Shown piece after piece: positions 21,998-41,983 of a DNA stretch of 42,041 bases. Positions within the stretch are counted from its first letter, which is position 1, and the number at the start of each line of letters is the position of its first letter. The stretch lies in the NCBI RefSeq assembly GCF_001194135.2, contig NC_068990.1:14913977-14956017 (forward strand), written 5' to 3'. The translations under genes were made by a program, and so were the position numbers. The notes beneath the pieces were generated by a model. It was given only the letters and a program-made list of their open reading frames with translations. It was not told where the DNA came from and made no database searches. This DNA is from Octopus bimaculoides (Eukaryota).

Positions 21998-24900
21998 ACT
22001 CTCAGAGTGGTTGGCATTAGGAAGGGCATCCAGCTGTAGAAACTCTGCTAAATCAGATTGGAGCCTGGTGTAGCCATCTGGTTCACCAGTCCTCAGTCAA
22101 ATCGTCCAACTCATGCTAGCATGGAAAGCGGACGTTAAACGATGATGAGGATGATGATGAATAACAATAATGATGATGGTTTCAAACTTTGGTACAAAGG
22201 TAGTAATTTTAGGAGGTTGAGGTTATTTGCACATTTTTTGAAATAACTAAGGATTGAAGTTAAAGAAAGTTTCCTTTTCTATATTTAAGAGGATTAATAA
22301 AGTTCATTGATTAGTTAACATTAATCATCTACATGCAACATCTTGCAAGCAGGAAATCAATTCTAACAATGGCGCCCACTGTGTAGCAAGGCAAGTGAGC
22401 GTGCTAGTTAAAGACTTTAGAAGAATTTGGGGACTTTGGACTAAAACTATTCAAAAGTTTCACGCTGACAAAAATTAAATGAAAAATACCTCATCATCAT
22501 CATCATCAACATCAGTGTTGTCATTGCCACTGCTGCCATCGTTGTTGGTGTTATTATTGTTGTCATGATTTAACCCTTTTGATATTAATCCGGCTGTAAC
22601 CAGCTCTGTAGTACAAATGTCTTGTTTCATAAGTTTTGAATTAAAATCTTCCACCAAACCTTAGTTACAATTTATGTTCTTAACACTAGCTTAATGATAA
22701 CTAAGTTATTTTACTAAATTCTTTGTTATATTTAAATTTAATTGAAAGAAACACAGAGCATCTCAAAATAAAAATGGTAATGAAAGGGCTAAATCCATAT
22801 TCCATGCTGGCATGGGTTGGACAGTTTGACAGGGTCTGATGGGCTCAAATACTGCATTGCATTTCAGTATCTGTTTTGGTATAGTTTCTATAGCTGGATA
22901 CCTTTCCTTGTAGTTTTCTGGTCCCTTGTTCTGAAGGTTCTTGGAATCCATACAACTTTGCAGTGTGTGCTGGCTGCTTTATTCATGCCACCAGCACCAG
23001 TGAGATTGCTATGCAGCTTTGAAGACTACGAGCCTCAAGTTGAGAGGGGTAACTTCATGCTAGGACAATAAGGTGTAGAGCGGTCTAAAGTATGAGAGAA
23101 AAGGGCCAGAGTTGGTTTCTTGCTGAAGAGGAGCCAAATGTCTACTCCCATTTTAGAAGAGAGAGAGAGGAGGTGGGGAGCTAGAAATTAGGGACGAGGA
23201 GTCAGAGCGAATCTTCAAGGTACAAGGTGGATAGGAATGAGTAGAGCAGGGGTGTCAGAAGTGAGTGGGAGCAGTTGGAGTATATCTGGTGCAGAACAGT
23301 AATAGGTTTACGATGATATAATAAGTAGGACTGCACTTAGGGTTATGTAGTAAAGTAGAAAAATAAGTATTTGTTTCAAGGGAATGTTCTTTTTGCTGGA
23401 GGCTGTCACATAATGGCATAATGGTAGTGAAAGAGAGAGAGAGAGAGATTGTGCGTGTGTTCTTAAAATGGGAGAATCACTTCTAAGTTTTTTTTTATTA
23501 TTATTTTGTGTTGAAAATTCTTATCAAAAGTGGACAGAGGATACATACATTTCACATGATTTTTTAAAATACCTATGTCTTGAAAAAATTTTGAAAATTG
23601 CATATAATTCAATAAATTTAAAAAATGCAATATCTTTTAATTTATCGAAAATTTAATGCTTAAGATTATGTAGTGAAGTAGAAAACCAGTAAATTTGTTT
23701 TAAGGAAATAGATAATGAAAGATTTCAAAAACATTCTTTATTGTATGTAATTTTTTCAAAACTTTCTTGTAAAATGTTTTGTAAAATGTTGAAATTTTGT
23801 TTTAATTTCAGAAAAACCTGTATGCAAATTCACAAATATTATGAAAGATCCTGATATCCTGCCAACAAGTGCTATTCAAGCTTCAAGTTATAACATCAAT
23901 AATAAAGCAGAAGATATTCGACCTGGTGAACAGTTGTGGTATTCTGCAGATAAAGACAAGTTTCCACACATAACCATTGACATCTCAAATATTAATTCCC
24001 CAATGGAAAAGGTTTCTTTAGCTCGCCCTCACAATATTAAATCATTTGAAGTTCTCTTAATGAATGGAAAAAAAGTACTTAAAACATACAAGGTAACTGT
24101 TTAGTTATAAAATAATACACACACACACACACATTTGGGTACAGGGATGGCTGTCAAAGTAAGTTTGCCTTGAAATTGCATGTTTGTACTGTGTAACCCC
24201 TTGGGTCATACAGTGCAAACCACAGTTTGACCAACAACCTTGTGAGTTTTGGTAGAGAGAAACTGTGCAGAAACTTATATATATATATATATATATAAAG
24301 TGAAGGAATAAAGATATTAAGTCTGGGCAGGTACCTTACAAGTATTCTAATATAATCCAGGTTCCAATTATTTTTAATGTCTTGTATATATATATATGTA
24401 TGTATATATATNNNNNNNNNNNNNNNNNNNNNNNNNNNNNNNNNAAAATAAGCAACAAGGATATCCAAAGTTAATGCAGTACGATCGTTTCATGCTATTC
24501 CATTTAATTAAGCAATGTGAACATTACATCAAATGTAAAATGCAGAGCAATCCTCAGTTGCACAAAGATATAGAAATTTACTGAAATTACATTTCAACAG
24601 AAGGACATATTTTTATAACTACATTTAAACTCTCCAAGTAGAAAGGAAGAATACAAAAAACCATTTTGACTTAGCCAGACCATACAGGCTAGTAAATAAT
24701 TCTAAGCAGATTTTTAACTGTCACTGATTTTATTTGTTTTTTTTTGTTTCTGATTTATGGATCATTTTATCAGACCTAGTGATTCAAACCTTAAGAGGGC
24801 ACTGGCATTTTCTTTGTAGGCAACGGAAAGGGGTAAACTATATAGACAGTAAACATGGATGATATAGTTATAAAATTTCTTATCATCCATGTTTACTGTC

Positions 24901-26903
24901 TATATTGTTTACTCTTTTCCCTACAAAGATAATGCCAGTGTCCTCTTAAGCTTTGAATCACTAGGTCTGATTAATCTTACTCAACAGGGTTCATAGCTCT
25001 AAGATTAGGGAGTCTCTCCAGGTTGAGCCACTACTTTTCTGTATTGAGAAGCGGTATTTCGTCTGTCTTTACGTTGAGTTCAAATTCCACCAAGGTCGGC
25101 TGCCTTTCATCCTTTCAGGATTGATAAATTAAGTACCAGTTATGCACTGGAGTCGATCTAATTAACTGGCCTCCTCCCCAAAATTTTTGGGCCTTATGCC
25201 TAGAGTAGAAAGTATACATTTTGAGTTCAGGCTGACTTCTTTTACTCTTTGCCAGACAGATGAAATAAGCATTTGAGTAGATAGATAAGCATGACTAAAT
25301 GCTTAAAGGTGGCACATTAGCATTCCTACAGGCAGATGATTTAAAAATAAACTGAAAGAATACTGAAATAATGTGAATTACTTTTTAAAATAAAATCTAT
25401 TTCGTTTAATATCTTATAACTTTTAGGCTAACACAAGACAAGGAGTAAATTTATATGACAAAACAGCAACTCATATAAAGGTGAATTTATTTCCGATCGA
25501 TGTCAAACAATGCATTGCTACAGAAGTTTCGATCTTTGCTTGTATGAGTGAAAGTCCAAGTAAGTTAATTCGTTAAGTTATTGCATTAATAGCTAAACTT
25601 CTTTTATTTCTTTAGTAAAGTAATCCACCATTGACATCATAAGTAAATATCATTGCCACTGCTACCACCACAACCCCACCACCACCACCACCACCACTAC
25701 CACCACCACTACCACCACCACCATCTCGATTGTCATCATTGTCATCGTCATCATTATCACCATTATCATAATTGTCATAATTTACACTGTTACTGAAATA
25801 AGTAGGTAAAACTTCATTGTTTCTTCTAAGCCAATTACAGACAGTTTGTTTCATAAATATAAGCTCTCAAATTTAGGAAGATGGTATACTCAATTACATG
25901 AGCTTCAGTACTTCACTGGAACTTTAAGTACTCAGAGAAATGAAACAAGGCTGAGTATGGTGAATTTCAAACACTGAGCATGGAGGGAGACAACTAAATA
26001 CTTTGAGGCATTTTTGCATAATATTCTACAAATTCTCCAAATTTCTAAACTAATTTGTAACCTTCAAAAAAGAATTGAATTTATTAGTAAAATTTCACTG
26101 TATTAATGTTTCTCTCTCTCTCTCTTGTTTGTTTGTTAATAAATGAATGACTGATAAAAGAACAGAAGTTATATAATCACCTTTAGCTTACATCTGTTTT
26201 GGCTATATAGAAACGTGCACATTGAGCTGGGTGCCAGTGGAACATTTAATAGCTTCTTCAAAGCCAGTTATATGAAGTTTTTATTGAGGAAAACATTTGA
26301 ATATATACACACATGTATGATATTATATTATATCATTTGTTTGTATTCATGTGCACAATTATATATTTAAATACTTGACAATAAGATGTCTCACTAGTAC
26401 TTCTTACAAAAGCTGGCTATAGCTTTTTAATCTCTGTTGAAGCCGTCCATGTCACATCTCACAGCTTTTATAGTATTCATAGAGCATTGAACAGCAGTTA
26501 TGATGTTGGCATTTTGATACCTAGTGTGAGTCATTATCATACAGGTAGCACTTTTCCAATATTCCGATAGCTTTCAGTTCTCCATGTCAGCTAATTTTTT
26601 CTCAACAACTTTTAATCTTTATGTTGTTATACACCACTGACTGTCTGCCAATACATGAAGCTCCTCTTGAATAAATATGACATAACAAATCGTCACATTT
26701 AGCCCCCACAGTGTAACCTCGTGGATATCATTGGCTATTTTTTCTTCCTCCGTCTTTCCCTTCTTAGGACTTTCTTTGTTTCCGACGAAGAGCTCCGCTC
26801 GAAACATCAAATTCTCTTTCTTTCCTTTCCTGAGCGTCCAGTAACACAATCTGTATCACGTCCTCACTTTGTTGTTGCTTTTTTGTCTTTTTCCGTTTTT
26901 GAA

Positions 26904-26941
<38 letters not shown>

Positions 26942-27316
26942 TGTACGTATGTATGTATGTGTGTGTGTATACATATACATGCACATACATGTGTATCTCT
27001 GAAAAATTGGAAGCAATGATGATTATATGTGTGTGCGTGTGTGTGTGTGTGTGTGTGTAGGAAGCCTTTGGACCCTGTTTACACTTTAGGAGATTCCTAC
27101 TGAAGTTCTGGAACCCACAAGCTGACCATGTCAACTAAGGATAACCCTTTGTTCAAGTGCTCAATAAGTAACTACATGGTCTTTTCTCTTCCCACTTTGA
27201 AGAGCGGTTTCAGACCACCAGCCATTAGGGTCTGAAGAAACACTGTAATGCTAAGCATTTTAGGGACATGAAACCTAAGGTAACCCCATAGACCAGCCAT
27301 AGCTATCTTTATCTAG

Positions 27317-27353: not shown

Positions 27354-30300
27354 TGTGTGTGTGTGTGTGTGTGTTTGTGTGTGTGCATACATAAATACAT
27401 ATATGCATATATACACACACACATAAATCTATATTTATTCATACATATATCATATTTGCCTTTATATGTAGCATCTAGTATCATCTTAGATTCAATCCAT
27501 GTAAATAAATGTATTCTTTTAAAATCTAAATTAATTAATAATGTTACATTTACTTTCATTTCTTTAATAGTAACCACACCTGAGGTAACCACCATATTAA
27601 CCCCAACTACATTTCTACCAACCAGTTAGTATACTTATTTATTCACTTATTGATTAAATTTTTCACATTAGATATTAAATTTATGATTTTACTATATCTA
27701 ATGACTCTCATTTTGATTTGATATTGCAAAACTCAAAGTAAAAATCTAATTTACTATTTCATATTTTGATTATACTGTTATATACAACTGCATCTCTATT
27801 AATGGCACCCTAACCTGTAACAGAGACAGGAATGATACAATGAGTGAGCCTCTACACAGTCGTTCATCCAACTAGAAATAGCAGCCAACTTCCATTAAAT
27901 CACTCTGCTTTCATGAACTCTTTGTTTGTCCTGTGTATCACATATTACCCTGGCATCTATGTGTCGTATGATGCAAATATCCAATTTTTTGGATATCTGT
28001 ATAAATCACTTAATAAATCACTGTATACCAGAATTCAGTGCAGAATTAAAATTACCATATAATATCTAAGCTGTTATATTGGTTGATATTTGCCCTGGAA
28101 CTCACTATTAGGTTTGTATGTGTTTGAGTTAGACTGAGTGACATTACAAAACAAAAACCAACAAGTAGTAGATATGGTTTTAAAAACTTTCTATTTGTTT
28201 TAAATGGAATCTATAAAGAATATTTTATAATTTTAACTAACGTTTCTGATAAGGCATTTAATTTCTTTTGTAGAATCATGGTGCATATTCAATGATGGCT
28301 TGGCAGAGCATACTTTAGTAAGAAACACAGATATCAATTTGTCAAGCAATGATGAAAACAAAAATGTTATTCGACCAGGAGGAAAAGGTTGGAAACCAGC
28401 AAAAGAAGATAAGAAACCGTTTGTTAGCTTTTTTGTTGGTGATTCTTTGAGGTATGGTGCATCTATACATCTAGGCAAGGCTAAAGATATTAAAAGTTTT
28501 GATGTTATTCTAAGTGGAGGTGAAAATAATAAGAAATATATGGTGAGTTTACAAAACAATGTTTGACTACTTTTTTTAATGCAGTAAAATGAACAGTTAC
28601 ATCATGGTAGAGTTATTCAAGCTGTCAAATAACACACAGAACTGTTCAAGTCACTTTTAACTTATTCCATAAAGTGTCAAAATGTCTCCCACAAATACAA
28701 CCTGGTCCCTGATACAGTTTCACAACTGTTCAAAAGCTTGGTCCCTGTAGGTCTCAGTTTTTGTCTATTTTTATTTCATATAAGACTTAAGGATATATGG
28801 GTTTGCTGTGTTTATGTAAATTTTGACCGCATAACCTTGGGCAATAATCTTTAGTAACTTTCAGTTTCTATTATTTTTATTGTATATATAGCATTGTGAC
28901 CATTCCACTTATTCCTTCATTTCTTCTTTCTTTTCTTGAATGTTAATTTTGAATGTAATTCTTCCATGGTTGAGATTTAAATATTGCACTGTCAAATTTA
29001 TTATCATTCTGTCCTGTAATAGTCTTTACTATCTTATTATCCCTAACTACCTTGTTCCAACTTTATCATAGTGTGGAAGGCATATTCCATTTTCATCAGT
29101 TTTTAGATGAAGAAAGGTATGTAAGCTGAAGTGAAGATAACAAATTTGGCTTTTTAACCAACCTCTCCTTTTCTGAGGATCAAACGCTGGAGTTGGCACA
29201 TTACCTTACCAGCACCTGCAATTCCAGCATTCGATTCAGCCTCCTGCTTCCCATCAGTTATAAAAACAGCTCTGAAATACTTGTCTCAGATCAAAATTAT
29301 TCTAGGTGAATATAACAAACCCATATTTCAAAGTTCAATACCGTGAGGTGGGGCGGAGCGAGAAGAAATCTAAAAACTATCAGGACTGATCTTGAACAAA
29401 CTTTTAAAAAGTTGTAATGGAACTATGCTAGTCACCAGGTCACGGTTATGCAATGAAAATATTTGACATGTCATGAAATAAGTTAAAGGTGAATTTAACA
29501 GATCTGTGTGCACTATTAACCCTTTAGCATTTAAACTGGCCATATCTGGCCCAAATATTCTACCTGTTTTATGTTCAAACTGATTAGATCTGGCCTCCTA
29601 CACCTACCCTACAATGCCATTCTAAAAAAATAAACAATCATATCAAAATCTCAAGGCCACAAGATAATGTGTGATAAATTCAAAGCAATATGAATGAATA
29701 AGAATTACATTTGATAGGGTAATCTGAATGTAAAGGGTTAAATGGCAAGGAGTACTCTTCCACAATGTGATTTGCTTCAGTTTTAATACATGATCTCTGA
29801 TAAAGTCACTTGCTAGACAAGTACAATTCCATAAAATAAATGTTTTAAAACCATGTCGTCTAAATTATATTTTGAAATAATTGTTTGTCAGAAGAAATTA
29901 TATTCTTGATTAAATATTGAGTATATTTACTTCTAAAATATAAATAAAGAAATTAATTGAAATCCTGGATTATGATTATTGCTAACTGTATGTAATATCG
30001 TTGCTAAGATTTGCTGCTAGTAAATTTGGAAAATATGGTTTTGTCATTTGATTATTTACTATGAAATTACTATTTTAAAATAATTGAAGAAACTATGTCA
30101 GCTAGGATAAATTTTGTTACATTAATTTTGTTAAGATGTGTGACCAAATGGTTTGGGTGTTGCACCAGTGACCATAAGACCATGGTTTCAATTATTTTCA
30201 TACTGGGCAATGCATTGTGTTCTTGAGCAAAACACTTCATTTTACATTGTTCTGGTTTGCTCAGCTTTGAATGAGTTCCAACAATTACTCAGAAGTTAAC

Positions 30301-33083: not shown

Positions 33084-36000
33084 ATTGAACATGTGAAATA
33101 ATTTACACCTGGTGCTATGGTGTTAGAGCAGATACCTGGTCATACAATAGATATTAATACATGCTTCTTTACTTCTGTTTTCAAAGTTAGATAAAGAAAC
33201 AGAAAATAATATAATGCACATACTTTTGTCAGATTATCCATTAACGCAGTTCATTCTCTTCTACTTGTGTATCCAATACAGGAAAATTTGAAAGACACTG
33301 TTGTTAAAATTCCATTTGGCACCACATCGCCTACCATAAAGATTTACTTCCAAGGTGTCCCAGGTGACTGTGACATGGCTGTAACAATATCTATAAAGGG
33401 GTGCTTTGAATCACGATGTAAGTATATTAATCTGCAAGTAACTCATCTTGACGTTGTTTTCTTTAACTTACCACATAACTAGTACAATTTATCTCTTATT
33501 ATGATACATTTATGTTTGTGTGTATGCATATGTTTATTAGTTATTCAGGGGGCCATAATGAATGGTTCCTATAAGCTTTAACCTTCTTCCCAACCTGGTT
33601 AGACTGATGTAGTTTATGGTCATTTGATCCTCTATTGTTCAACTACAAGGCTGAATTAAGAGCCATAAAGTTCCTAACCATTTAAAAGATTTTGGTGCCC
33701 ACCCCTATATATGTAATTGAAAATATAAACAATAATAAACCATAAAATAATCTTTATAAGGGATTAAAAATAAAAATGGTGAATGTATGTCTTCCAAACT
33801 GTAGTTGTTTTAGTTTCAATGCAGTCACAGATCAAATCACTTGCCTGACAAATTCATCTCCAAAAACCTTACATTAGCATATAGAAACAATGGTATATTA
33901 GAAACGTAAATCATGTTAAACTAATTTTAGACATTTAAAACTCCCTGTAATTCATATCTTGTCAATTTTCATTTTGATTTTAGCTACAACACCTCTTCCA
34001 ACATCAACAGCACAACCAACAACAGCAACAGGTATAATGATTAAAAGACACTTTTTCAATTTCTTTAATATGAAAAATCTAAAGAATCTTTCTAAAATTT
34101 TATACAAAATTTTATCTAATAATGAATTGAATTTCTTCTGTAGAGTCTTGGTGTGTATTCAATGATGGTTTGGCAGATCATACTTTAATAAGGAACTCGG
34201 ATATTGATTTGTCAAGCAATGATGAAAACAAAAATGTTATTCGGCCAGGAGGAAAAGGCTGGAAACCAGCAAAAGAAGATAAGAAACCATTTGTTAGCTT
34301 TTTTGTTGGTGACTCCTTGAGGTATGGTGCATCTGTACGTCTGGGCAAGGCTAAAGATGTTAAAAGTTTTGATGTTATTCTAAGTGGAGGTGAAAACAAT
34401 AAGAAATACATGGTGAGTCTACTGAAATGATGTTTGTCTTTCACAATAATAAAATATAAAATGTTATAAAACTATATGATGTTGGTTATATTATTTTGAA
34501 ATATTTCTTTGTCAACACAGATAACATGCATGGTTAGATATTGAGTATCTTTAGTTTTAAAATATAAATACATAAAATAAAATTCCGCATTGTAACTATT
34601 AATGTTAGATATATATAACATTCAATATTGTTAAATTTAACTTTTAGTAAGCATAAAAAGAGTTTTTTCTTCATTTAATTACTGACTGTAAAATCATTAG
34701 GTAAAAATTACCAAGTAATTATGTGAGAACAAGTTTATTTATTTTATTCTAGTTGTGAGTTAAGATTTCATTGTAATATTCTATAACATGTTTTATTTAT
34801 GTTGTTGAATTCAAAAATGAAGAAAAAAATTATTATTGTTACCGTGACACTTTTTCTCATATTATTCACAAATATAATCATCTTTCTCTGTTTGAATATC
34901 CAGGCAAACTTAAAAGACAGTGTTGTTAAAATCCTATTTGGTACCACATCAACAACTGTAAAGATCTCTTTCAAAGGAGTTCCAGGAGATTGTAACATGG
35001 CTGTAACAGTATCTATAAAGGGATGCTTTGAATCACAATGTAAGTATTTTGAACATATGGGTATCACTTCTCCTTCTGCTTCATTTATGTAGAGTTGCAA
35101 TATAACTTGTAGCAATTTGTGTATCGTTAGTATACAGTACTGGACTACATCATAGCTAGAAAATGAAATGAATAACGAACAAAAATATTCAATAAGGAGG
35201 TTTAAAATGATTGCTAACTTTAAACTACAGTGTTTGCTAGAATACTGCAATGTATCCAAGGAGTTGAAAACATTTTGAATTGTAAAACTGTGAAAAAAGG
35301 AATTGAACAAACCTCTGGTATTAATATTTATAATATAATAAAATGTGAAGTGAAAAAGATAGGGGAAAAATACACCATAAAAGGATTGGAATATCTGCCC
35401 AGCTATCTTACTATATGCTGCCCCTTAAAAATAAAAGTGAAGATGAAAATGCTTTTTGCTTCGCATGCATTTTTCTAGGAAATAGAATTATTAAAGAATG
35501 AATGTTATGCTAGAAAATAAAAAACTGAAGAAACAAATGAATTCAATAATGATAGTAAAATATGAAGTGGACAATAGAGTATTGGCTGGACACTATAAAG
35601 CATATAATGTGATGAAAACAGATTGAATTGTAAAAAGGCGCAATAAACAAGTCATTGATACTTTTCTCATATTAAACACTCATTTAACCAAGTTTGTGGT
35701 ATTATCCATTTCCTAAAAACAGATTTCAACAACTGAAAAATTTCCCAATTTCTTAATCATATGTAATGAATAATGAAAGCTCTGACCAATTCATTTAGGT
35801 TTTTTTGATACACGGAATCCCAAAATAGTATTAATTTTGCAATTTGATTTTTCAATATGGTAGAAATCCAAGATGGCAGCCAAAATACGCAATTTTGTTA
35901 ATGAAATCAGTAGCTTTTGAGGAAATTTCAGAAAACAAAGTAGGATTAACATCTCCACCTAATGTAAATACTCATGGATGTATTATATATGATTCTTTAT

Positions 36001-36688
36001 TTTCATTCTATTAGGGAATAATCAATGTAAATTTATAAAGTGATAATTTCTTAAATTTCATTGTCTTTCATTTCCATTTCAGCCACACCTGTTCCAACAA
36101 CAACACTCCAACCCACAACACAAACAGGTAAACTATTTCTCTTTCATAGAAATATTAGTGTTTTTAGATATTGTAATAATACTCATGGTAATAATGGTCA
36201 TTTTGTTGATTTCATTTTATTTATTGATATTGTTTTCTAGAATCCTGGTGTGTATTCAATGATGGTTTGGAAGATCCCTCATTAATAAGGGCGTGGGACA
36301 TTAAATTATCAAGCAATGATAAAAGTCCAGATGCTATTCGCCCGGGTAGAAATGGTTGGAGACCAGATGAAGGTGATATGAAGCGCACAGTAACAATGTT
36401 TGTTGGTGATGCTTTAAGATATGGTGCATCTATTCATCTATTACGAGCTGTGGGTGTTGCAAAGTTCGATGTTATTCTCAGTGGAGGAGAGAATAATAGA
36501 CTTAAGGTGAGTTTCAGTGAGGTAAATTTACTATAACAATATTATCACATTAAACACTTTATTGAAATAGTTCCATAAGTTTTAGCATTATTATCCAATC
36601 CTACAGAAACGCTGCTCTCAGGGCAGTTTTCTGTTAGAATATGTCATGTTTGCTTGTAGGAAACAGCTGTGATGTGTATTTCTGCCAA

Positions 36689-36741
<53 letters not shown>

Positions 36742-36875
36742 NNNNNNNNNNTGCCATATGATAAATAGACAGGGTATAAAATTTTGTTCAAATATTCTCA
36801 AAGAGAAATTTCGTATTAACTTATATTTAATGAAATTAATTGAATGGAGGCAATAGAAAAGCAATATAAATGAGT

Positions 36876-36950
<75 letters not shown>

Positions 36951-39900
36951 TAGAGAGAGAGAGAGATTGTATCTGTTACAAAGTAGTACAGTGAATGTGT
37001 CAGTGTGTACTGGGAAAGAGAAGCGAAAAGTATTAAATGAAATAACAAAAACAATGATTGTGATTGAAGTTTGTGTGAAAGAGAATAAAGACTGAAGAGG
37101 TGATGTTGAAAAATTTAAGCATCAATATATTACATAAGAGTTTTCTAAACACTTTAGACTTTAATGCTTTCTTTTGCTAAAAGTTACATAATTCCTACTA
37201 AGTAATACACAGATTCTTTACCCCAGTATAAAATATAGAGCCCATTAAAATCGCTTATAACATAAATTATCATAGGAATATGAGATTTAAAGAATACTTT
37301 AAAAATTGTTTGACTATATGCAGAGGTGATTTGTTATATTTTTGCCTTTCTTCCCAAATTACTTGTATAACTACGTATTTGGGGACTGAAATGATCAAAA
37401 GATTGCTTGATATGATTTCCATTGATAACCATAAATAAATGTCTTTGAAAATCTTTGAAATATGCTATATGACAAGCATTTTGTGAAACAAATTATACGT
37501 TTAATTTAGAAGCAATGATAGTTTTATCTAAAGCTGTTTATATCTGCATTACCTGTCTATCCAGAACAATGAAAATAGAAATTTATAAAAATTCCATATT
37601 ATATTAGTCAAGAATCTTACAGTATTCCTTACATGTGCCTCTCTCATCCATAATATCTTTAGGCTTTTAGTCAGTTCATCTAGTGTCATCTAGCAAGTGG
37701 TTTATTAGTATTTCACTTCTAAGTTTACCATGTACTAAAGAAAGCATGTCATCTAGCAAGTGGTTAATTTAACTTTTTATTAGTGTTTCACTTCTGTTTA
37801 CCATGTACTAAAGAAAGCAGTTGGCTTTAAAAAATTACTCAGGCTTTACTGTTTCAGAGAAAAAAAAATGTCCTGCCAAGAACATCACAGATCCAGAGTA
37901 TTCTGACAACTTGGCAATAGTCAATGATCAAATGAAAGATGCCAATATCTCCCAATATGATGTGGAGAAAAAAGCCAGTAAAATTGTTCCACATAACAAT
38001 GCTACTAAGACAAAATACATATATTAGGAAAGTTTGCATTCTATGAATGGAGAAGAAATGTAAAAAAATAGAGAACTACAAATGTATTGTAAGTCATATT
38101 TCTAAATCCAAGATTGGTACAGATATGAGAATTAGTAAAGCACGGCGAGTACTTAAGTTACATTACATTAAACATAGTGAAAATACTACCAATTACTATT
38201 TTTCTCTCTTTGTTTATCTAAAACTTCCTTATCCCTTATTTTCTTCTGTATCCAGAACAATGAAAAGGATGCTATTGTTAAAATTCCATTTGGAACAACA
38301 TCAGACACAGTGAAAATCCATTTTGTTTCTGATTCACCAAAATGCAAAATGATAGTTACAGTATCTTTCAAAGGTTGTTTTGAATCGAGGTGTAAGTATA
38401 AAGCAAAACTGTAGTCAAAAGTATCATGTCATATATATATGAGAATTATTTACAATATGCTGGTGCCACATTAAAAGCATCCATATTGGTGCAATGTAAA
38501 AAGCAGCCATGCTGGTGCCATGTAAGATGCACCATACCCAAGAAGGGCATCCAGCTGTAGAAAACATGCCAAACCAGACATAGAGTTTGGTGCAGCTTGT
38601 CAGCTCCTGTCAAACCATTCAACCTGTATCAGCATGGAAAATGGATGTTAAATGATGATGATGATGACGACGATGACGACGACGACGACAACAATGACAA
38701 TGACGATTTACTTCTCTGTTGGCTGTTTCAATAATTATTACAAAACAATTTAAACAGAACATTATAGTGAATAATTTAATCATCTGCACCATCATCTTCA
38801 AAGTTTCCTTACGCATTAATAATTTTATGATCATAAGATTTGTTAATATGTTCATAAAAAACTTTATAAATACTTAGTAATAACAAAAACTTTTCATTAA
38901 ATAAATTAACAAATATCATGTATAAAAATATTGCATTTGATTGTGAATTAATATTATAAAGGGAAAATTGAATTTATCTTTGTCTTCTGTTATAAAATTT
39001 ACATACATAAAGAATATATTTTCATAATATAGCGTTCAGTTTGTATTTTAAAATGGAAGCAATTAGTAACACACAATTCTTACAAATTTAGCAAATATTA
39101 AATTGCCAAACATCTATTATAACTTCTGTTTCACCTTTTTTTCACATAGCAACAACACCAGTACCAACAACAATACTTCCTACAACCACACCTCTACAAA
39201 CAAGTAAGTGATGAGATTCATTACTTAAAGTCATTAAAAATATTGAAGATGTATATTTGAATGTTAATTTCTAAAGAATATTTTGTGAAATAATTCATGT
39301 AAATTTGTAAATTCAGTATAATGGATGGCATATGAAATTTTGTTTCCTTTCGTTTTTATCTTAGCCACACCTATTCCAACAACGCCACAACCAACAACAC
39401 AAACTGGTAAGAATATTTCCTAAATTTTGAGATATTCCATGAAGACTCATAAAAATACTTATTTAATTAACTGTTTATTTATTATTTTTTTTTACCTTTT
39501 TGCTGATTACAATTCACTCATGGATACTGTTTTCTAGAATCCTGGTGCATATTCAATGATGGTTTGGAAGATGTCTCATTAATACGAGCTTGGGACATTA
39601 AATTATCAAGCAATGATGAGAATCCAGATGCTATTCGCCCAGGTAGAAAAGGCTGGAGACCAGATGAAGGTGATATGAAGCGCACAGTAACTATGTTTGT
39701 TGGTGATGCTTTAAGATATGGTGCATCTATTCATCTATTACGAGCTGTAGGTGTTGCAAAGTTTGATATAATTCTCAGTGGAGGAGAGAATAATAGATTT
39801 AAGGTGAGTTTCAGTTAGGTAAATTTACTATAACAATATTATCAGATTAAACACTTTTCTGAAATCATCATCATCATCATCGTCATCGTTTAATGTCCAA

Positions 39901-41983
39901 TTTCCATGCTGGCATGGGCTGGACGGTTTGACTGAGGACTGAGGTCTGGCAAGCCAAAAGGCTGCACCAGGCTCCAATCTGATCTGCCAACCGCTCCAAG
40001 AGTGTAGCAGGTGCTTTTTATATGCCACCGGCATGAGGATCAGTCAGCCATGCTCGACTGGTGCTTTTTACGTACCACCAGCTCGGAAGCCAGTCAGGCA
40101 GCACTAGCAACAACTACTCTCAAATGGTGCTTTTTCACATGCCACTGGCATGGGAGCCAGTCAGGTGGCACTGGCAATGACCCCGCTTGAATGGTGCTTT
40201 TTATATACCACCAGCACAGGACCAGTCAGGCTACAACTTAAATGAATATCGAAATACTAGTGGAACCTGTGGAACTTCCATGGAACAAAATAATTAAGAG
40301 GAGCTATTTAAGAAAGAAACGATAATTTGCATTTTTATTGCATATATATATATATTATTGTTGCCTGGAGAAGAAATGTAAAAAAATAGAGAACTACAAA
40401 TGTATTGTAAGTCATATTTCTAAATCCAAGATTGGTACAGTCATAAGAATTAGTAAAGAATGGCGACTACTTAAGTGACATTACATTAAACATAGTGAAA
40501 ATACTACCAATTACTATTTTTTTCTCTTTGTTTATCTAAAACTTCCTTATCTCTAATTTTCTTCTGTATCCAGAATAATGAAAAGGATGCTATTGTTAAA
40601 ATTCCATTTGGAACAACATCAGACACAGTGAAAATCCATTTTGTTTCTGATTCACCAAACTGCAAAATGATAGTTACAGTATCTTTCAAAGGTTGTTTTG
40701 AATCAAGGTGTAAGTATAAAGCAAAACTTTTGCAAAAATTTCCTAGTCATGAATCTCACTTTTTTTTACAAAATTTTCTCATCTGTTGGCTTTTTCAATA
40801 ATTAGAAGAAAACAAATTAAATAGAACATTATAGGGAACAATTTAATCCTTCTACATTATCATCCTCAAAGTTTCATTAAGCATTAATGACTTTATAGTT
40901 ATAAGATTCATTATAAATTTACAAATACATACTAATAACAAAAACTTCAGATTGAATAAATTTTTACAAATGTGATATATAAAAATATTATATTTCATTG
41001 TGAATACATATAAAAGTTGCAATGAATATATTCCTCTTGCTTTTATTATAAAATTTTTATCCTTAAGGAATAGATTATCATAATATTGTTTGTATCTTTA
41101 AAAAGAAACAATTGCTGATAAGCAACTCTCAAATTTTGCTAATATTAACTTTCCAGGTATATAGTTGAGATTATTTTTATAACTCGAATGCTGTTCATAT
41201 GTTTTATTTTTCCATTTGACATAACACTTCTTATGCTAACTTCTAGTTTATCCTTTGTTTGCATAGCAACAACACCACTACCCACAACAATACTTCCAAC
41301 AACCACACCTCTGCCAACAAGTAAGTGAAATTTTTCATTACTTCGTCCACTCATTGTTGTTTTTTCTTGCTTGTTCATGTTTGGACTGACTATATATATA
41401 TACATATATATATATATTAAAGTCAATAAAAATACTTCAAGATATATTACATTTGATGGTATATTGACAAACAGTATTTTATCAAACATTTGATGTAAAT
41501 TTATACACTACATTTGATGGATTGTAATTGAAATTTCGTTTTCTTTCATTTTTATTGTAGCCACACCTGTTCCAACAACAACGCTCCAACCCACAACACA
41601 AACAGGTAAACTATTTCTCATCCTGTGATACATCATTTTTGTTGAAATTTGAAATAATAATTATAAAAATAATGGTATTTTCTTGATTGCATTTTATTTA
41701 TTGATATTGTTTTCTAGAATCTTGGTGTGTATTCAATGATGGTTTGGAAGATGCCTCATTCATAAGGGCTTGGGACATTAAATTGTCAAGCAATGATGAA
41801 AATCCTGATGCTATTCGCCCAGGTAGAAAAGGCTGGAAACCTGATGCAAGTGATAACAAGTGCACAGTAACATTGTTTGTTGGTGATGCTTTAAGATATG
41901 GTGCATCTATTCATTTATTAAGAGCTGTAGGTGTTGCAAAGTTTGATGTTATTCTCAGTGGTGGAGAGAATAAGAGATTTAAG
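579..41983 (+). CDS. Interior of a multi-exon gene: VWD/C8/TIL mucin-, SCO-spondin- or hemocytin-like secreted protein with one LDLa and at least 7 F5/8C-like repeats (partial at both ends)
   Basis: 34 exons with AG/GT boundaries and matching phases; VWD motifs ([17 protein letters not shown]), C8/TIL/E cysteine spacing, LDLa DCQDGSDE, repeated 2-exon beta-sandwich-like domains. No orthology test was possible, so no symbol is given. Confidence 0.93.
1090..1255 (+). mobile_element. Fragment of interspersed repeat family B (tandem ggtgccatgtaaaaagcac units then gtggttggcattaggaagggcatccagc)
   Basis: Shares motifs with the copies at 14740, 21995, 38455 and 39865. Confidence 0.7.
1993..2224 (+). 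CDS. Exon: C8 domain ([12 protein letters not shown]...[21 protein letters not shown]...YLRECALHG...KC)
   Basis: ttctttcag| acceptor, T|gtaagt donor, phase 0-1, C8 cysteine pattern. Confidence 0.93.
2411..2812 (+). mobile_element. 5'-truncated RLE-type (R4/Dong-like) non-LTR retrotransposon 3' end, copy 1
   Basis: Encodes [27 protein letters not shown]...[19 protein letters not shown], like the C-terminus of restriction-like endonuclease ORFs; flanked by (TACA)n. Confidence 0.7.
2948..3362 (+). pseudogene. RLE-type retrotransposon 3' end, copy 2 (premature stop)
   Basis: [30 protein letters not shown]; colinear with copy 1 through the 3' UTR. Confidence 0.7.
3638..3779. mobile_element. Small MITE-like hairpin element
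   Basis: 17-nt terminal inverted repeat (tttaataacagtttgac / gtcaaactattattaaa, 1 mismatch) plus imperfect inner arms. Confidence 0.55.
4044..4293 (+). CDS. Exon: 10-Cys TIL domain and start of E module (FQCPHEK...[27 protein letters not shown]...)
   Basis: ttccag| acceptor, TG|gtaagt donor, phase 1-2. Confidence 0.94.
4477..4720 (+). pseudogene. Penelope-like element GIY-YIG endonuclease fragment, frameshifted
   Basis: [27 protein letters not shown], then in another frame [32 protein letters not shown], matching the Penelope C.C..CPL.G.C..VVY / YIG.T..FK.R..H..SF pattern. Confidence 0.72.
5410..5605 (+). mobile_element. 3' half of SINE family A, degenerate
   Basis: Similarity to 145-365 and to the reverse complement of 6343-6550. 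Confidence 0.7.
5771..5963 (+). CDS. Exon: end of E module and most of TIL' ([15 protein letters not shown]...CPKNQIYY...[13 protein letters not shown])
   Basis: ttataag| acceptor, GAT|gtgagt donor, phase 2-0. Confidence 0.93.
6343..6759 (-). mobile_element. Full-length tRNA-derived SINE family A with internal CA/TA microsatellite
   Basis: Minus strand: A-box-like TGGCTGTGTGGT, B-box-like GGTTCAGTCCC, (gtaaaaga)n tail; multiple copies in the window. Confidence 0.88.
6811..7119 (+). mobile_element. tRNA-derived SINE (head X, body Y) with perfect 14-bp TSD
   Basis: ATATGAAGAAGAGT at 6797-6810 and 7120-7133; A-box TGGCTTAGTGG, B-box-like AGTTCAATTCC. Confidence 0.88.
7353..7444 (+). CDS. Exon: end of TIL' and start of E' ([30 protein letters not shown])
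   Basis: ttgtag| acceptor, TT|gtatgt donor, phase 0-2; resembles VWF [20 protein letters not shown]. Confidence 0.9.
8045..8215 (-). mobile_element. Penelope-type terminal repeat fragment containing a minimal hammerhead motif
   Basis: Minus strand CTGATGGA-GGCTG..CAGCT-GAAAC-GTT at 8125-8168; the Penelope link rests on established PLE-hammerhead association. Confidence 0.6.
8125..8168 (-). ncRNA. Minimal type I hammerhead ribozyme motif (one core substitution)
   Basis: GCAC CUGAUGG A GGCUG GAGGGUAUAU CAGCU GAAAC GUU GUGU: stem I GCAC/GUGU, 5-bp stem II, palindromic AACGUU stem III. Confidence 0.65.
8278..8360 (+). mobile_element. Short tRNA-derived element (SINE head or tRNA pseudogene)
   Basis: A-box TGACGTAGTGGT and B-box GAGTTCAATTCC, between (ATT)n and (AAT)n tracts; no clear acceptor stem. 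Confidence 0.65.
8539..9185. other. Assembly gap
   Basis: Run of N. Confidence 1.
9244..9283. repeat. Inverted telomere-like repeats (TAACCC)3..(TTAGGG)2
   Basis: ttaaccctaaccctaaccctaaccttagggttagggttaa. Confidence 0.9.
9850..9899 (+). CDS. Exon: end of E' ([17 protein letters not shown])
   Basis: tttttacag| acceptor, G|gtatat donor, phase 2-1, joins both neighbours in frame. Confidence 0.85.
10410..10794 (+). mobile_element. tRNA-derived SINE (head Z, body Y) with probable 8-bp TSD
   Basis: A-box TGGCCCAGTGG, B-box GTTTCGATCCC; ACAGTTCA at 10402-10409 and 10795-10802; 3' body shared with 6811-7119. Confidence 0.85.
10928..11269 (+). CDS. Exon: N-terminal part of D3-like VWD ([27 protein letters not shown]...GLTVLWDF)
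   Basis: tttccag| acceptor, G|gtatgt donor, phase 1-1, classic VWD start and LxVxWD motif. Confidence 0.96.
11390..11495 (+). mobile_element. Degenerate head of SINE family A
   Basis: catggctgtatgagtaagaagctt...ggttcaatctcactgc resembles the family A 5' end. Confidence 0.55.
12120..12933. other. Assembly gap predicted to hide the missing VWD exon(s)
   Basis: Run of N; the flanking exons have incompatible phases (1 vs 0) and the VWD C-terminal GLCG segment is absent. Confidence 0.9.
12934..13245 (+). repeat. GC-rich, probably transposon-derived fragment with TATAAAA motif
   Basis: GC and CpG content far above the flanks; TATAAAA near 12996; no gene-like motif. Family not identified. Confidence 0.35.
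13416..14110. repeat. Long inverted repeat: arms 13416-13580 and 13946-14110
   Basis: About 165-nt arms that are reverse complements with scattered mismatches; 365-nt spacer; arm contains B-box-like GGGTTCGAGTCCC. Confidence 0.9.
14540..14679 (+). CDS. Exon: C8 domain, first part ([28 protein letters not shown]...[11 protein letters not shown])
   Basis: tccttag| acceptor, GG|gtgagt donor, phase 0-2. Confidence 0.92.
14740..15095 (+). mobile_element. Longer fragment of repeat family B
   Basis: Homologous in reverse to 22793-23420 and in sense to 21995-22160. Confidence 0.65.
15588..15814 (-). mobile_element. piggyBac-type MITE (TTAA ends), opposite orientation to 29516-29741
   Basis: ttaatcccttaacattcagat...tattaaaaggttaa; interior is the reverse complement of the 29516 copy. 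Confidence 0.75.
15835..15944 (+). CDS. Exon: C8 domain, second part ([36 protein letters not shown])
   Basis: tttccag| acceptor, C|gtaagt donor, phase 2-1, WRT..LCP motif. Confidence 0.94.
16000..16320. repeat. Compound microsatellite (CTAT)n/(CTGT)n/(TACA)n/(TG)n
   Basis: Directly visible. Confidence 0.9.
16320..16515 (+). mobile_element. 3' half of SINE family A
   Basis: ctgcttgacaactg...gtgccccaaaatggctacactccaatgactggaac. Confidence 0.7.
16789..16944 (+). CDS. Exon: TIL domain ([24 protein letters not shown]...[15 protein letters not shown])
   Basis: ttctgcag| acceptor, G|gtaaaa donor, phase 1-1, CVEGCFCP motif. Confidence 0.92.
17521..17617 (+). CDS. Exon: end of TIL and start of E module ([32 protein letters not shown])
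   Basis: aattttag| acceptor, TG|gtaagc donor, phase 1-2. Confidence 0.92.
17930..18135 (-). mobile_element. SINE family C with Meta/MESC-like core
   Basis: Minus strand gaggtcgattttgcctttcatc...gataaattaagtaccagt after a tRNA-like head. Confidence 0.72.
18873..19104 (+). mobile_element. Internally deleted mariner element (TA TSD, about 30-bp TIRs, transposase C-terminal remnant)
   Basis: TA-ttgggttgtctggaaagtttgtgttgatt ... aatcggcacgaactttccggacaatccaa-TA; encodes [30 protein letters not shown], like mariner C-termini. Confidence 0.85.
19269..19432 (+). CDS. Exon: end of E module plus LDL-receptor class A repeat ([55 protein letters not shown])
   Basis: tatttcag| acceptor, G|gttagt donor, phase 2-1; six-Cys LDLa with acidic DxxxDCxDGSDE motif. 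Confidence 0.95.
19487..19945 (+). mobile_element. 5' half of SINE family A joined to a family-B-like 3' segment
   Basis: Head ggcatggttgtgtggttaag...ggaaactgaaagaa, CA/TG tract, then aggaaaggtatcc...cccatgtaggcatggaaaagt. Confidence 0.65.
19965..20145 (-). mobile_element. SINE family C copy
   Basis: ctggtactt...tgaaaggctaagctgacc...atttgaactcagaa, similar to 17930-18135. Confidence 0.65.
21105..21146 (+). CDS. Candidate 42-nt linker micro-exon ([14 protein letters not shown])
   Basis: Long polypyrimidine tract ending ttttag, weak donor G|gtttgt, phase 1-1, open frame; not needed to keep the frame. Confidence 0.6.
21230..21379 (-). mobile_element. SINE family C copy
   Basis: gaaaggatgaaaggcaaagtcaacctc...gctaacgattctgccagctc. 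Confidence 0.72.
21381..21520. repeat. (AAT)n microsatellite
   Basis: Directly visible. Confidence 0.97.
21520..21956 (+). mobile_element. 5'-truncated R4/Dong-like RLE retrotransposon inside (AAT)n, interrupted by the gap at 21591-21836
   Basis: [24 protein letters not shown] resembles the [22 protein letters not shown] motif; (AAT)n on both sides. Confidence 0.68.
21591..21836. other. Assembly gap
   Basis: Run of N. Confidence 1.
21995..22160 (+). mobile_element. Repeat family B 3' end with (GAT)n tail
   Basis: gtggttggcattaggaagggcatccagc...catggaaagcggacgttaaacgatgatg. Confidence 0.78.
22570..22792. mobile_element. piggyBac-type MITE, second family
   Basis: TTAA-cccttttgat ... tgaaaggg-CTAA termini. 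Confidence 0.7.
22793..23420 (-). mobile_element. Long fragment of repeat family B
   Basis: tccatgctggcatgggttggacagtttgac at the left end; homologous to 14740-15095. Confidence 0.65.
23812..24092 (+). CDS. Exon A0: N-terminal part of F5/8C-like domain 0 (EKPVCKF...SAIQASS...[23 protein letters not shown]...KTYK)
   Basis: aatttcag| acceptor, AAG|gtaact donor, phase 1-0; I.ASS, IRP..W, P.I.ID pattern resembles discoidin ITASS..ARL..W..PWLQID. Confidence 0.88.
24412..24444. other. Assembly gap
   Basis: Run of N. Confidence 1.
24769..24971. repeat. Near-perfect fold-back hairpin (MITE-like)
   Basis: Arms 24769-24864 and 24881-24971 are reverse complements; 16-nt loop. Confidence 0.92.
25043..25212 (+). 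mobile_element. SINE family C copy (5'-truncated)
   Basis: gagttcaaattccaccaaggtcggctgcctttcatcctttcagg...taagtaccagt. Confidence 0.72.
25427..25559 (+). CDS. Exon B0: C-terminal part of domain 0 (ANTRQGV...[32 protein letters not shown])
   Basis: ttttag| acceptor, A|gtaagt donor, phase 0-1; ending resembles discoidin ARYIRI.P...IALRLEL.GC. Confidence 0.88.
25655..25790. repeat. (CCA)n/(CAT)n compound trinucleotide tract
   Basis: Directly visible. Confidence 0.85.
26620..26900 (+). mobile_element. Probable Penelope-type terminal repeat with a degenerate hammerhead motif at 26779-26812
   Basis: ttt CCGACGA A GAGC TCC GCTC GAAAC ATC aaa; CpG-rich relative to the flanks. Confidence 0.5.
27571..27624 (+). 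CDS. Thr/Pro linker micro-exon, class L1 ([18 protein letters not shown])
   Basis: tttaatag| acceptor, A|gttagt donor, 54 nt, phase 1-1, homologous to the exons at 39150 and 41267. Confidence 0.8.
28274..28542 (+). CDS. Exon A1 of F5/8C-like repeat 1 (alpha type: SWCIFNDGL...[19 protein letters not shown]...KKYM)
   Basis: ttttgtag| acceptor, ATG|gtgagt donor, 269 nt, phase 1-0. Confidence 0.93.
29516..29741 (+). mobile_element. piggyBac-type MITE with TTAA TSD
   Basis: TTAA-ccctttagcatt ... gaatgtaaaggg-TTAA. Confidence 0.82.
30130..30280 (+). mobile_element. Degenerate head-X SINE fragment
   Basis: gttcttgagcaaaacacttcattttacattg matches the head X of the 6811 and 31404 copies. Confidence 0.55.
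30805..30940 (+). CDS. Exon B1 ([45 protein letters not shown])
   Basis: atccag| acceptor, A|gtaagt donor, 136 nt, phase 0-1. Confidence 0.93.
30958..31337 (-). mobile_element. Full-length SINE family A
   Basis: Colinear with 6343-6759 from tail to head; begins 17 nt after the B1 donor. Confidence 0.87.
31404..31743 (+). mobile_element. tRNA-derived SINE (head X, body W) with degenerate 13-bp TSD
   Basis: A-box TGGCTCAGTGG, B-box GAGTTCGAATCC; agtatattttgta at 31391-31403 vs agcatactttgta at 31744-31756. Confidence 0.85.
32511..32558 (+). CDS. Linker micro-exon, class L2 ([16 protein letters not shown])
   Basis: gattttag| acceptor, G|gtatga donor, 48 nt, phase 1-1. Confidence 0.9.
32672..32940 (+). 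CDS. Exon A2 (alpha type)
   Basis: ttctgtag| acceptor, AAG|gtaagt donor, 269 nt, phase 1-0. Confidence 0.94.
33282..33417 (+). CDS. Exon B2 ([45 protein letters not shown])
   Basis: aatacag| acceptor, T|gtaagt donor, 136 nt, phase 0-1. Confidence 0.93.
33984..34031 (+). CDS. Linker micro-exon, class L2 ([16 protein letters not shown])
   Basis: gattttag| acceptor, G|gtataa donor, 48 nt, near-identical to 32511-32558. Confidence 0.9.
34144..34412 (+). CDS. Exon A3 (alpha type)
   Basis: ttctgtag| acceptor, ATG|gtgagt donor, 269 nt, phase 1-0. Confidence 0.94.
34904..35039 (+). CDS. Exon B3 ([45 protein letters not shown])
   Basis: atccag| acceptor, T|gtaagt donor, 136 nt, phase 0-1. Confidence 0.93.
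36083..36127 (+). CDS. Linker micro-exon, class L2 ([15 protein letters not shown])
   Basis: catttcag| acceptor, G|gtaaac donor, 45 nt, phase 1-1. Confidence 0.9.
36241..36506 (+). CDS. Exon A4 (beta type: [14 protein letters not shown]...[22 protein letters not shown]...NNRLK)
   Basis: ttttctag| acceptor, AAG|gtgagt donor, 266 nt, phase 1-0. Confidence 0.94.
36742..36751. other. Assembly gap
   Basis: Run of N within a (TA)n tract. Confidence 1.
36880..36966. repeat. (GA)n microsatellite
   Basis: Directly visible. Confidence 0.95.
37684..37819. repeat. Local tandem duplication (63-nt and 73-nt units)
   Basis: tgtcatctagcaagtgg...ccatgtactaaagaaagca occurs twice in tandem. Confidence 0.85.
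37850..38027 (+). pseudogene. Possible degenerate LINE reverse-transcriptase fragment
   Basis: [20 protein letters not shown] resembles the RTE-type YPA..ITDADYADDLALL motif. Confidence 0.4.
38256..38391 (+). CDS. Exon B4 ([45 protein letters not shown])
   Basis: tatccag| acceptor, T|gtaagt donor, 136 nt, phase 0-1; missed by the ORF track. Confidence 0.93.
38455..38705 (+). mobile_element. Repeat family B with (GAT/GAC)n tail
   Basis: ggtgccacattaaaagca units, gaagggcatccagctgtagaaa, catggaaaatggatgttaaatgatgatg. Confidence 0.75.
39150..39203 (+). CDS. Linker micro-exon, class L1 ([18 protein letters not shown])
   Basis: ttcacatag| acceptor, A|gtaagt donor, 54 nt, phase 1-1. Confidence 0.9.
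39365..39406 (+). CDS. Linker micro-exon, class L2 ([14 protein letters not shown])
   Basis: atcttag| acceptor, G|gtaaga donor, 42 nt, phase 1-1. Confidence 0.9.
39538..39803 (+). CDS. Exon A5 (beta type)
   Basis: ttttctag| acceptor, AAG|gtgagt donor, 266 nt, phase 1-0. Confidence 0.94.
39865..40230 (-). mobile_element. Repeat family B with internal tandem units of about 60 nt
   Basis: (ATC)n tail, tttccatgctggcatggg, repeated ggtgctttttatatgccacc...agccagtcagg. Confidence 0.78.
40574..40709 (+). CDS. Exon B5 ([45 protein letters not shown])
   Basis: tatccag| acceptor, T|gtaagt donor, 136 nt; 3 differences from B4. Confidence 0.93.
41267..41320 (+). CDS. Linker micro-exon, class L1 ([18 protein letters not shown])
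   Basis: ttgcatag| acceptor, A|gtaagt donor, 54 nt, phase 1-1. Confidence 0.9.
41561..41605 (+). CDS. Linker micro-exon, class L2 ([15 protein letters not shown])
   Basis: tattgtag| acceptor, G|gtaaac donor, 45 nt, phase 1-1. Confidence 0.9.
41718..41983 (+). CDS. Exon A6 (beta type; the gene continues beyond the window)
   Basis: ttttctag| acceptor, AAG|gtgagt donor, 266 nt, phase 1-0. Confidence 0.93.

Follow-up and report, generated by a model that had tools for sequence, protein, structure and literature searches.

Exon organization of the array

We analysed a 42,041-nucleotide (nt) stretch of the Octopus bimaculoides genome (contig NC_068990.1 of assembly GCF_001194135.2, positions 14,913,977 to 14,956,017 of the forward strand; hereafter the window, in whose coordinates all positions in the octopus gene are given), an AT-rich piece of eukaryotic DNA with about 31% G+C and five gaps of N. 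The window probably carries the central part of a single large gene on the + strand, encoding a secreted glycoprotein of the SCO-spondin-like or gel-forming-mucin-like kind. This work concerns the array of repeated units in the 3′ part of the window, each unit ('bead') being split between an A and a B exon, predicted to fold as a divergent discoidin domain, and separated from the next by short Thr/Pro linkers that are encoded by micro-exons. A first-pass annotation, made from the letters of the window alone, had proposed at least seven such units between 23812 and 41983, with A exons of 266–281 nt and B exons of 133–136 nt, appended to a mucin-type D assembly (VWD-C8-TIL).

Stop-to-stop reading frames and the placement of splice borders gave an array of 21 exons on the + strand (seven A, six B and eight Thr/Pro micro-exons), whose unit number, exon sizes and end coordinates match that proposal exactly. 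The linkers were located by scanning between the units for micro-exons that are stop-free, Thr/Pro-rich and of phase 1-1. The exons of the array are listed below, the A and B exons as defined by splice borders and open frame, and the linkers by the micro-exon scan and open frame.

23812..24092, + strand: unit 0 A exon, 281 nt
25427..25559, + strand: unit 0 B exon, 133 nt
27571..27624, + strand: Thr/Pro linker micro-exon L0
28274..28542, + strand: unit 1 (alpha) A exon, 269 nt
30805..30940, + strand: unit 1 (alpha) B exon, 136 nt
32511..32558, + strand: Thr/Pro linker micro-exon L1
32672..32940, + strand: unit 2 (alpha) A exon, 269 nt
33282..33417, + strand: unit 2 (alpha) B exon, 136 nt
33984..34031, + strand: Thr/Pro linker micro-exon L2
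34144..34412, + strand: unit 3 (alpha) A exon, 269 nt
34904..35039, + strand: unit 3 (alpha) B exon, 136 nt
36083..36127, + strand: Thr/Pro linker micro-exon L3
36241..36506, + strand: unit 4 (beta) A exon, 266 nt
38256..38391, + strand: unit 4 (beta) B exon, 136 nt
39150..39203, + strand: Thr/Pro linker micro-exon L4a
39365..39406, + strand: Thr/Pro linker micro-exon L4b
39538..39803, + strand: unit 5 (beta) A exon, 266 nt
40574..40709, + strand: unit 5 (beta) B exon, 136 nt
41267..41320, + strand: Thr/Pro linker micro-exon L5a
41561..41605, + strand: Thr/Pro linker micro-exon L5b
41718..41983, + strand: unit 6 (beta-like) A exon, 266 nt; its B exon lies beyond the window end

Three size classes are found among the A exons (281 nt once, 269 nt and 266 nt three times each) and two among the B exons (133 nt once, 136 nt five times). 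All 21 exons are bordered by ag and gt, and the A and B exons have canonical borders, with ag before the exon and gt(a/g)ag after it. Every junction between units holds one or two of the eight linker micro-exons (42–54 nt), as the first-pass annotation had described; the linkers in the window are 15–32 amino acids (aa) long, and the beads occupy most of the array region. The A acceptor is in phase 1, the A/B junction in phase 0 and the B donor in phase 1, and units and linkers are therefore 1-1 symmetric. Together with an upstream exon for an LDL-receptor class A (LDLa) module, the array exons (22 exons in all) form a single open frame of 1084 codons, in which a spliced A+B unit measures 133–137 aa. 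A microsatellite, (ACC)20, stands at 25664–25723, just 3′ of exon B0, and reads as poly-Thr, poly-Pro or poly-His depending on the frame; it was considered as a Pro/Thr/Ser-rich (PTS) exon and rejected, having no splice-compatible borders in the micro-exon scan.

Two of the N gaps fall in phase-0 introns between A and B exons; both adjoin simple repeats and leave the coding sequence untouched. The first (24412–24444) is in the A0–B0 intron, 320 nt past the A0 donor, with the B0 acceptor a further 983 nt on, and the second (36742–36751) is in the A4–B4 intron, 236 nt past the A4 donor and 1505 nt before the B4 acceptor, directly 3′ of an (AT)27 run. Units 0 and 4, once spliced, can be aligned with the ungapped units along their entire length, indicating that no sequence within a unit has been lost in the gaps. 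A whole additional set of B exon, linker and A exon may lie within an array gap, and the frame would then be kept.

Predicted fold of the unit

The first-pass annotation had called the units discoidin-like. HMMER comparison with the Pfam family F5_F8_type_C (PF00754) gave no match for the units, and it was the predicted fold and profile–profile comparison that bore the assignment out. Because a word-indexed protein search with one unit as query returned no homologue, an exhaustive profile search was needed; run against 1.84 billion representative proteins, it returned 70 relatives in other animals at E<1e-3. When PF00754 was compared with 25 members of the family thus defined, a single one matched (1/25, E 0.11), and in a positive control six true discoidin domains all matched F5_F8_type_C (best E 2.5e-35). 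Profile searches of PDB sequences gave nothing significant with either a 6-sequence or the 25-sequence alignment. Designed 'Scone' repeat proteins, which reached lower E values there than the best credible match, were dismissed as spurious, since they held no individually significant stretch.

AlphaFold2, given the six window units as an alignment, produced an all-beta model with a predicted local distance difference test score (pLDDT) of 78.5, and with the 25-sequence family alignment it produced a beta-sandwich with a pLDDT of 91.3 and a predicted template-modelling score (pTM) of 0.86. For both models the top Foldseek matches in the PDB were neuropilin b1, factor VIII C2, the CASPR2 discoidin domain, CBM32, chitosan-binding modules and retinoschisin (probability 1.00, E ~1e-4, TM score 0.57–0.68). 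The confident beta-sandwich agrees with the jelly-roll expected of a discoidin domain.

For profile–profile comparison, six classical domains, all verified with Pfam as F5_F8_type_C, were assembled into a discoidin alignment, the factor VIII C2 sequence being also verified against PDB entries. With hhalign, the family profile aligned to it over 136 columns (probability 72.6%, E 3.2e-5). The score of 34.7 compares with 8.8 for the reversed control, and with at most 14.3 and 20.2 in 30 column shuffles and 30 block shuffles, respectively; against the single factor VIII C2 sequence the family profile gave no significant match (E 0.44). In the alignment with the six domains the match extends from one terminal Cys to the other, and the GM, I..SS, R and W.P motifs coincide. 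Among the 25 family members C3, I20 and C130 are invariant and R33 is nearly so. C3 and C130 are aligned with the two terminal Cys of discoidins and may form the domain-closing disulfide. On the evidence of predicted fold and profile alignment we assign the unit to the discoidin (F5/8 type C, galactose-binding-domain-like) superfamily, within which it constitutes a separate and strongly divergent family. According to the family alignment and the AlphaFold2 model, R33 and W39 (the conserved RPG...W segment) lie in a long non-strand segment and not in a core strand; these two residues are the best candidates for a binding site.

Unit classes, duplication and selection

Pairwise identities showed the three proposed sequence classes to be real. 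Unit 0 is 24–31% identical to the other units, alpha units 1–3 are 87–91% identical among themselves, and beta units 4 and 5 are 94% identical, with the A exon of unit 6 clustering with the beta units; identity between alpha and beta units is 60–65%. The ratio of non-synonymous to synonymous divergence (dN/dS) between copies is 0.14–0.29 in pairwise comparison, indicating that the array exons are under purifying selection. An origin of the units as pseudo-exons or from a repeat element was ruled out by the open frame, by dN/dS and by homologues in other phyla.

Duplicated segments that include intron sequence were found at 32493–33001 and 33966–34468 (93% identity) and at 38048–38432 and 40366–40750 (95%). 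Segments made up of a unit and its linker were thus duplicated in tandem as the array expanded, and the duplicates retain recognisable intron sequence. Synonymous divergence between copies in the alpha and beta blocks is 0.17–0.36, which argues that the duplications are not very recent; of the 'two recently amplified surface variants' in the first-pass annotation, the local duplication of the alpha and beta blocks thus stands and the recency does not. Fixed differences between alpha and beta units occupy 42 of the 134 positions, 18 of the 57 in predicted strands and 24 of the 77 outside them, with no concentration in loops. This even spread gives no specific support to the suggestion that the two classes are surface variants with different ligands.

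Relatives in other animals

In the searches run we found no annotated protein that covers the window array, the closest octopus protein being 53% identical. The domain is carried by several proteins named 'mucin-2-like': those of Lineus longissimus (XP_064639835.1, 4464 aa, 13 copies of the domain), Patella vulgata (XP_055959230, a domain array), Mytilus californianus (XP_052090877, a domain array with TSP1 repeats at the end) and Liolophura sinensis. It also occurs in uncharacterised proteins of Tubulanus polymorphus, Bugula neritina and O. bimaculoides, and in an unnamed protein of the cuttlefish Acanthosepion pharaonis. In all these relatives the domain alternates with Pro/Thr/Ser linkers, and Pfam sees no domain in their arrays either. 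The Patella and Lineus proteins start with a Cys-rich, EGF-like region, as read from their sequences, and in both the domain comes after VWD-C8-TIL assemblies and LDLa repeats. Taken together, these sequences indicate that the domain family is conserved across Lophotrochozoa and is not specific to cephalopods. The array had been described as lineage-specific, a claim that has to be given up, since the same domain with PTS linkers stands behind VWD-C8-TIL/LDLa in Patella, Mytilus, Liolophura, Lineus, Tubulanus and Bugula.

The Lineus protein (for example at residues ~1500–1640) also has a second Cys-to-Cys domain of about 140 aa (CLENAKTIDYLKSDDVLVTASSS...W...ACYE), which alternates with the new domain and with LDLa modules; it is more like a classical discoidin in look and is likewise missed by Pfam.

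In the cuttlefish locus (CAHIKZ030000437.1, 637380–723225; 85.8 kb without gaps), 22 or more A/B exon pairs follow one another in tandem within 77 kb, all on the same strand. The intron between A and B is in the same place as in the octopus, and the array extends past the locus on either side. The annotated 662-aa cuttlefish model CAE1174531.1 skips and mixes exons and under-annotates the gene.

Another O. bimaculoides protein, A0A0L8GSU4 (P0089), starts inside an A exon and comprises five 'gamma' units (87–94% identical to each other, ~60% to alpha and beta); a terminal unit of divergent sequence comes next, and then three TSP1 domains, two TIL domains, a VWC domain and a cystine-knot-like end. 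Its isoform A0A0L8GSE0 has six gamma units.

D assemblies and LDLa exon upstream of the array

Exons on the + strand upstream of the array exceed the Pfam cut-offs for VWD, C8, TIL and LDLa:

579..776, + strand: end of the upstream VWD domain, exon in open frame (GLCGNFNHD motif; D assembly before D3), 100% contained in gene-model fragment P0074
1966..2250, + strand: C8-domain exon of the upstream D assembly, in open frame (open frame, Pfam)
4013..7493, + strand: TIL and Cys-rich exons, open frames 4013–4294, 5754–6035 and 7353–7493 (open frames, Pfam)
10927..11292, + strand: first VWD exon of D3 (Pfam VWD, 71 bits)
14540..15955, + strand: C8 exons of D3, 14540–14680 and 15836–15955 (Pfam C8, 54.5 bits)
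16791..16958, + strand: TIL exon of D3 (Pfam TIL, 32.5 bits)
19269..19432, + strand: LDLa exon, donor in phase 1 (Pfam Ldl_recept_a, 35 bits)

The fragment P0074 (UniParc UPI00069570A3; 679 aa) passes the Pfam cut-offs for VWD, C8 and TIL, is 100% identical to the upstream window exons and ends at the gap that starts at 12120. The same exons align with residues 1038–1535 of the 4007-aa Patella vulgata 'mucin-2-like' model, that is, from the third VWD assembly into the LDLa repeats. Of the N-terminal VWD-C8-TIL assemblies, which the gene has in common with gel-forming mucins, the window includes the last two only. For the C-terminal part of the D3 VWD domain (the GLCGNFDG region, ~60–80 aa in the paralogue described below and in Patella) we found no match between 11292 and 14540, nor elsewhere in the window; it probably lies within the 814-N gap at 12120–12933, where P0074 also stops.

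The window has a single LDLa exon, the donor of which is phase-compatible with the acceptor of unit 0. Further small or LDLa exons could lie in the gap at 21591–21836, which separates the LDLa exon from unit 0; in the relatives from Patella and Lineus, several LDLa modules precede the array or are interspersed in it. The proposal that the array is appended to a D assembly is upheld by the VWD-C8-TIL exons and the one LDLa exon in compatible reading phase. The term 'mucin-type' fits only loosely: long PTS domains are missing (the linkers being of 15–32 aa) and the overall architecture is nearer to that of SCO-spondin.

A paralogous N-terminal fragment of O. bimaculoides (P0073, on scaffold LGKD02089635.1, annotated 'SCO-spondin') is 41% identical to the D3–LDLa region of the window, which means that two or more such genes are present in the octopus. 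No array exons were found on the paralogue scaffold before its end, and only interspersed repeats, at no more than 94% identity, are common to it and the window.

Other features of the window

ARAGORN reported no tRNA-like features in the window. None of the minus-strand open reading frames of at least 110 aa was read as a gene, as each crossed simple repeats or N gaps, or was antisense to array exons and introns. An interspersed repeat of ~400 bp has intronic copies at 6342–6767, 10414–10794 and 30958–31343, and weaker ones, for example at 112–368 and 19499–19670. It is 75–94% identical to many copies on both strands of O. bimaculoides scaffold LGKD02089635.1 and has no tRNA-like part (ARAGORN). 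Simple repeats in introns include (ATA)47 at 21381–21521 and (AG)45 at 36876–36966, the latter reading as Arg/Glu repeats, and the A5–B5 intron has a tandem repeat at 40048–40231 (67-bp unit, 2.8 copies).

Discussion

The F5_F8 domain has been described as characteristic of lophotrochozoan mucin-like proteins (Lang et al. 2016, PMC4948705), and in insect hemolectin F5_F8 domains stand between 3+2 VWD units (PMC4948705). Limpet pedal mucus contains an SCO-spondin-like protein (three vWFD, C8, TIL, five LDLa) that is expressed in the pedal sole and was interpreted as SCO-spondin without its C-terminal two thirds (Kang et al. 2020, PMC7333891). SCO-spondin proteins were also reported from octopus skin mucus (PMC11431876) and from snail mucus (PMC10475054). 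That VWD proteins with F5/8C domains are typical of Lophotrochozoa is thus already known, and nothing known is overturned by our results; what is new here is a discoidin subfamily, invisible to Pfam, in long arrays.

In a secreted glycoprotein of the proposed SCO-spondin-like or gel-forming-mucin-like kind, the D assemblies would polymerise the protein through disulfide bonds, as they do in VWF and mucins, and a C-terminal cystine knot would join in polymerisation if A0A0L8GSU4 is the 3′ part of the window gene. From their composition, the Thr/Pro spacers would be O-glycosylated, stiff and extended. Each bead, if it serves as discoidin and CBM32 domains usually do, could bind glycans or other surface ligands weakly, and many beads on one chain would then allow multivalent binding, cross-linking or anchoring of a mucus or matrix network. 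The likely role is thus to bind multivalently, or to cross-link, within a polymer that is secreted.

Several observations weigh against this interpretation. The spliced units have no match in Pfam, F5_F8_type_C included, and for five units none appears even at E<=10; the best credible match of the 25-sequence family profile among PDB sequences, a CBM32, has an E of 0.095; and the hhalign probability of 73% is of only moderate significance. The canonical discoidin motifs TQG, GN.D and R..R are absent from the family consensus, which is why Pfam misses the unit and also why ligand binding need not be conserved. Every window unit has a third Cys that is not conserved in the wider family (e.g. GDCDM in 30805–30940, PKCKM in 38256–38391), and the A exon of unit 6 (41718–41983) has one further Cys (DNKCTV); with an unpaired Cys in each bead, disulfides between beads or between chains could be conceived of. 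True gel-forming mucins have PTS domains that far exceed these linkers in length. The splicing of the array exons we infer from splice signals, reading frame and homologues, and a mucus or matrix role for this paralogue is putative. A0A0L8GSU4, finally, may be the 3′ continuation of the window gene or of its paralogue.

The loss of the ligand-site motifs invites the reading that the beads are inert structural spacers, making up an extensible or protease-resistant rod in the manner of Ig-like or SEA modules, with the Thr/Pro glycans and the Cys-rich ends as the functional parts. The differences between alpha and beta units are spread evenly over strands and loops, as neutral drift under fold constraint predicts, and conservation in the family is mostly at core positions. 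A dN/dS of 0.14–0.29 is, however, fairly strict for a mere spacer, and a conserved site on the surface is hinted at by the nearly invariant Arg33 and the conserved RPG...W, which lie in a long segment outside the strands, so that we regard inert beads as unlikely. We are more doubtful still about a direct orthology to SCO-spondin proper, in which glia-like or neuroepithelial cells would secrete the octopus protein into a Reissner-fibre-like matrix and the array would be only an elaboration of SCO-spondin's single F5/8C module. The order of domains does mirror that of SCO-spondin (VWD-C8-TIL, LDLa, discoidin-like and then, in A0A0L8GSU4, TSP1, TIL, VWC and a cystine-knot-like end), NCBI names both the O. 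bimaculoides paralogue and an O. vulgaris fragment 'SCO-spondin', and SCO-spondin-like genes are expressed by invertebrate radial-glia-like cells (PMC5543218). The molluscan proteins of this type, however, come from external mucus, namely limpet pedal and octopus skin mucus (PMC7333891, PMC11431876). The presence of at least two octopus paralogues also makes a single 1:1 orthology unlikely. Vertebrate SCO-spondin, moreover, differs in array and repeat content: it has many more LDLa and TSP1 repeats and is not known to carry a PTS-linked array of many discoidin beads.

A clotting or immune lectin of the haemolymph, of the hemocytin/hemolectin type, in which the beads would agglutinate microbes or cells, appears improbable. 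The discoidin/CBM32 fold is often a lectin fold, which agrees with such a function, but hemolectin has a 3+2 VWD layout in which F5_F8_type_C domains detectable with Pfam stand between the blocks (PMC4948705), whereas the units in the window are not detectable in this way; the window shows no VWD 3′ of the units, and in the candidate C-terminal model that place is taken by TSP1, TIL and VWC.

Beyond the secreted, mucus- or matrix-forming polymer that we prefer, we make a wider proposal, tentatively and with somewhat more doubt than belief: the bead would represent an undescribed domain family found throughout Lophotrochozoa, branching from the discoidin superfamily, encoded by two exons and hidden from Pfam. 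It would predominate among the repetitive modules of the SCO-spondin-like polymers in the mucus and adhesives of molluscs, nemerteans and bryozoans, would play a CysD-like role in them through multivalent, lectin-like cross-links, and would have expanded to dozens of copies in cephalopods. If this is true, published descriptions, such as that of the limpet pedal-mucus protein, overlooked the greater part of the molecule. Judging from the Patella gene model, proteins of the limpet pedal-mucus type may continue into the array, the identity of the published P-vulgata_3 with XP_055959230 being putative. Mucus and temporary adhesives of molluscs and other spiralians are studied as biomaterials, and their large polymers are poorly annotated. 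In such a gene a large part is invisible to domain libraries, and this part is a conserved discoidin-type module under selection, repeated between short Thr/Pro spacers. The module can now be searched for by profile and is a specific candidate for the part of these secretions that binds or cross-links. The design that it suggests for mucin-like proteins of invertebrates is one of beads on a string made from the discoidin fold, where vertebrate mucins use CysD, and it offers a testable link between SCO-spondin-type and mucin-type polymers.

Among known systems, insect hemolectin/hemocytin resembles the octopus gene in combining VWD-C8-TIL with discoidin-type domains, and hemolectin sometimes has a very small PTS segment nearby (PMC4948705). 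It has two canonical F5_F8_type_C domains flanked by 3+2 VWD units, however, and lacks the array, LDLa and TSP1. The vertebrate gel-forming mucins MUC2, MUC5AC and MUC5B likewise have D assemblies for multimerisation, and in them, too, small disulfide-stabilised globular domains alternate with O-glycosylatable Pro/Thr/Ser segments. The proportions are reversed in the octopus, where the beads dominate, the PTS segments are of 15–32 aa and the bead is discoidin-like and not CysD. In place of the long central PTS domain or domains of those mucins, the window has only eight Thr/Pro micro-exons of 42–54 nt.

SCO-spondin has VWD-C8-TIL assemblies, LDLa and then a discoidin-type module in common with the octopus gene; the candidate C-terminal part, with TSP1, TIL, VWC and cystine knot, is also alike, as would be secretion and polymerisation. 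The one or few discoidin modules of SCO-spondin are replaced in the octopus gene by a long array with Thr/Pro linkers, and a single LDLa exon is present in the window. For the limpet protein P-vulgata_3, the published description ends at the LDLa region and the array is unreported (PMC7333891). With the F5/8 type C domains themselves (factor V/VIII C1/C2, neuropilin b1/b2, lactadherin, retinoschisin, CASPR2 and DDR, as well as bacterial CBM32), the octopus unit has in common the predicted distorted beta-sandwich, a profile alignment that is co-linear from end to end with the terminal Cys in register with the discoidin disulfide pair, and, in the N-terminal half, C-x3-GM, I-x2-SS, R and W-x-P. 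It differs from them in being shorter (133–137 aa against ~150–160), in being split between two exons by a fixed phase-0 intron, and in that the new family occurs in arrays of 7 to more than 20 copies, against one or two.

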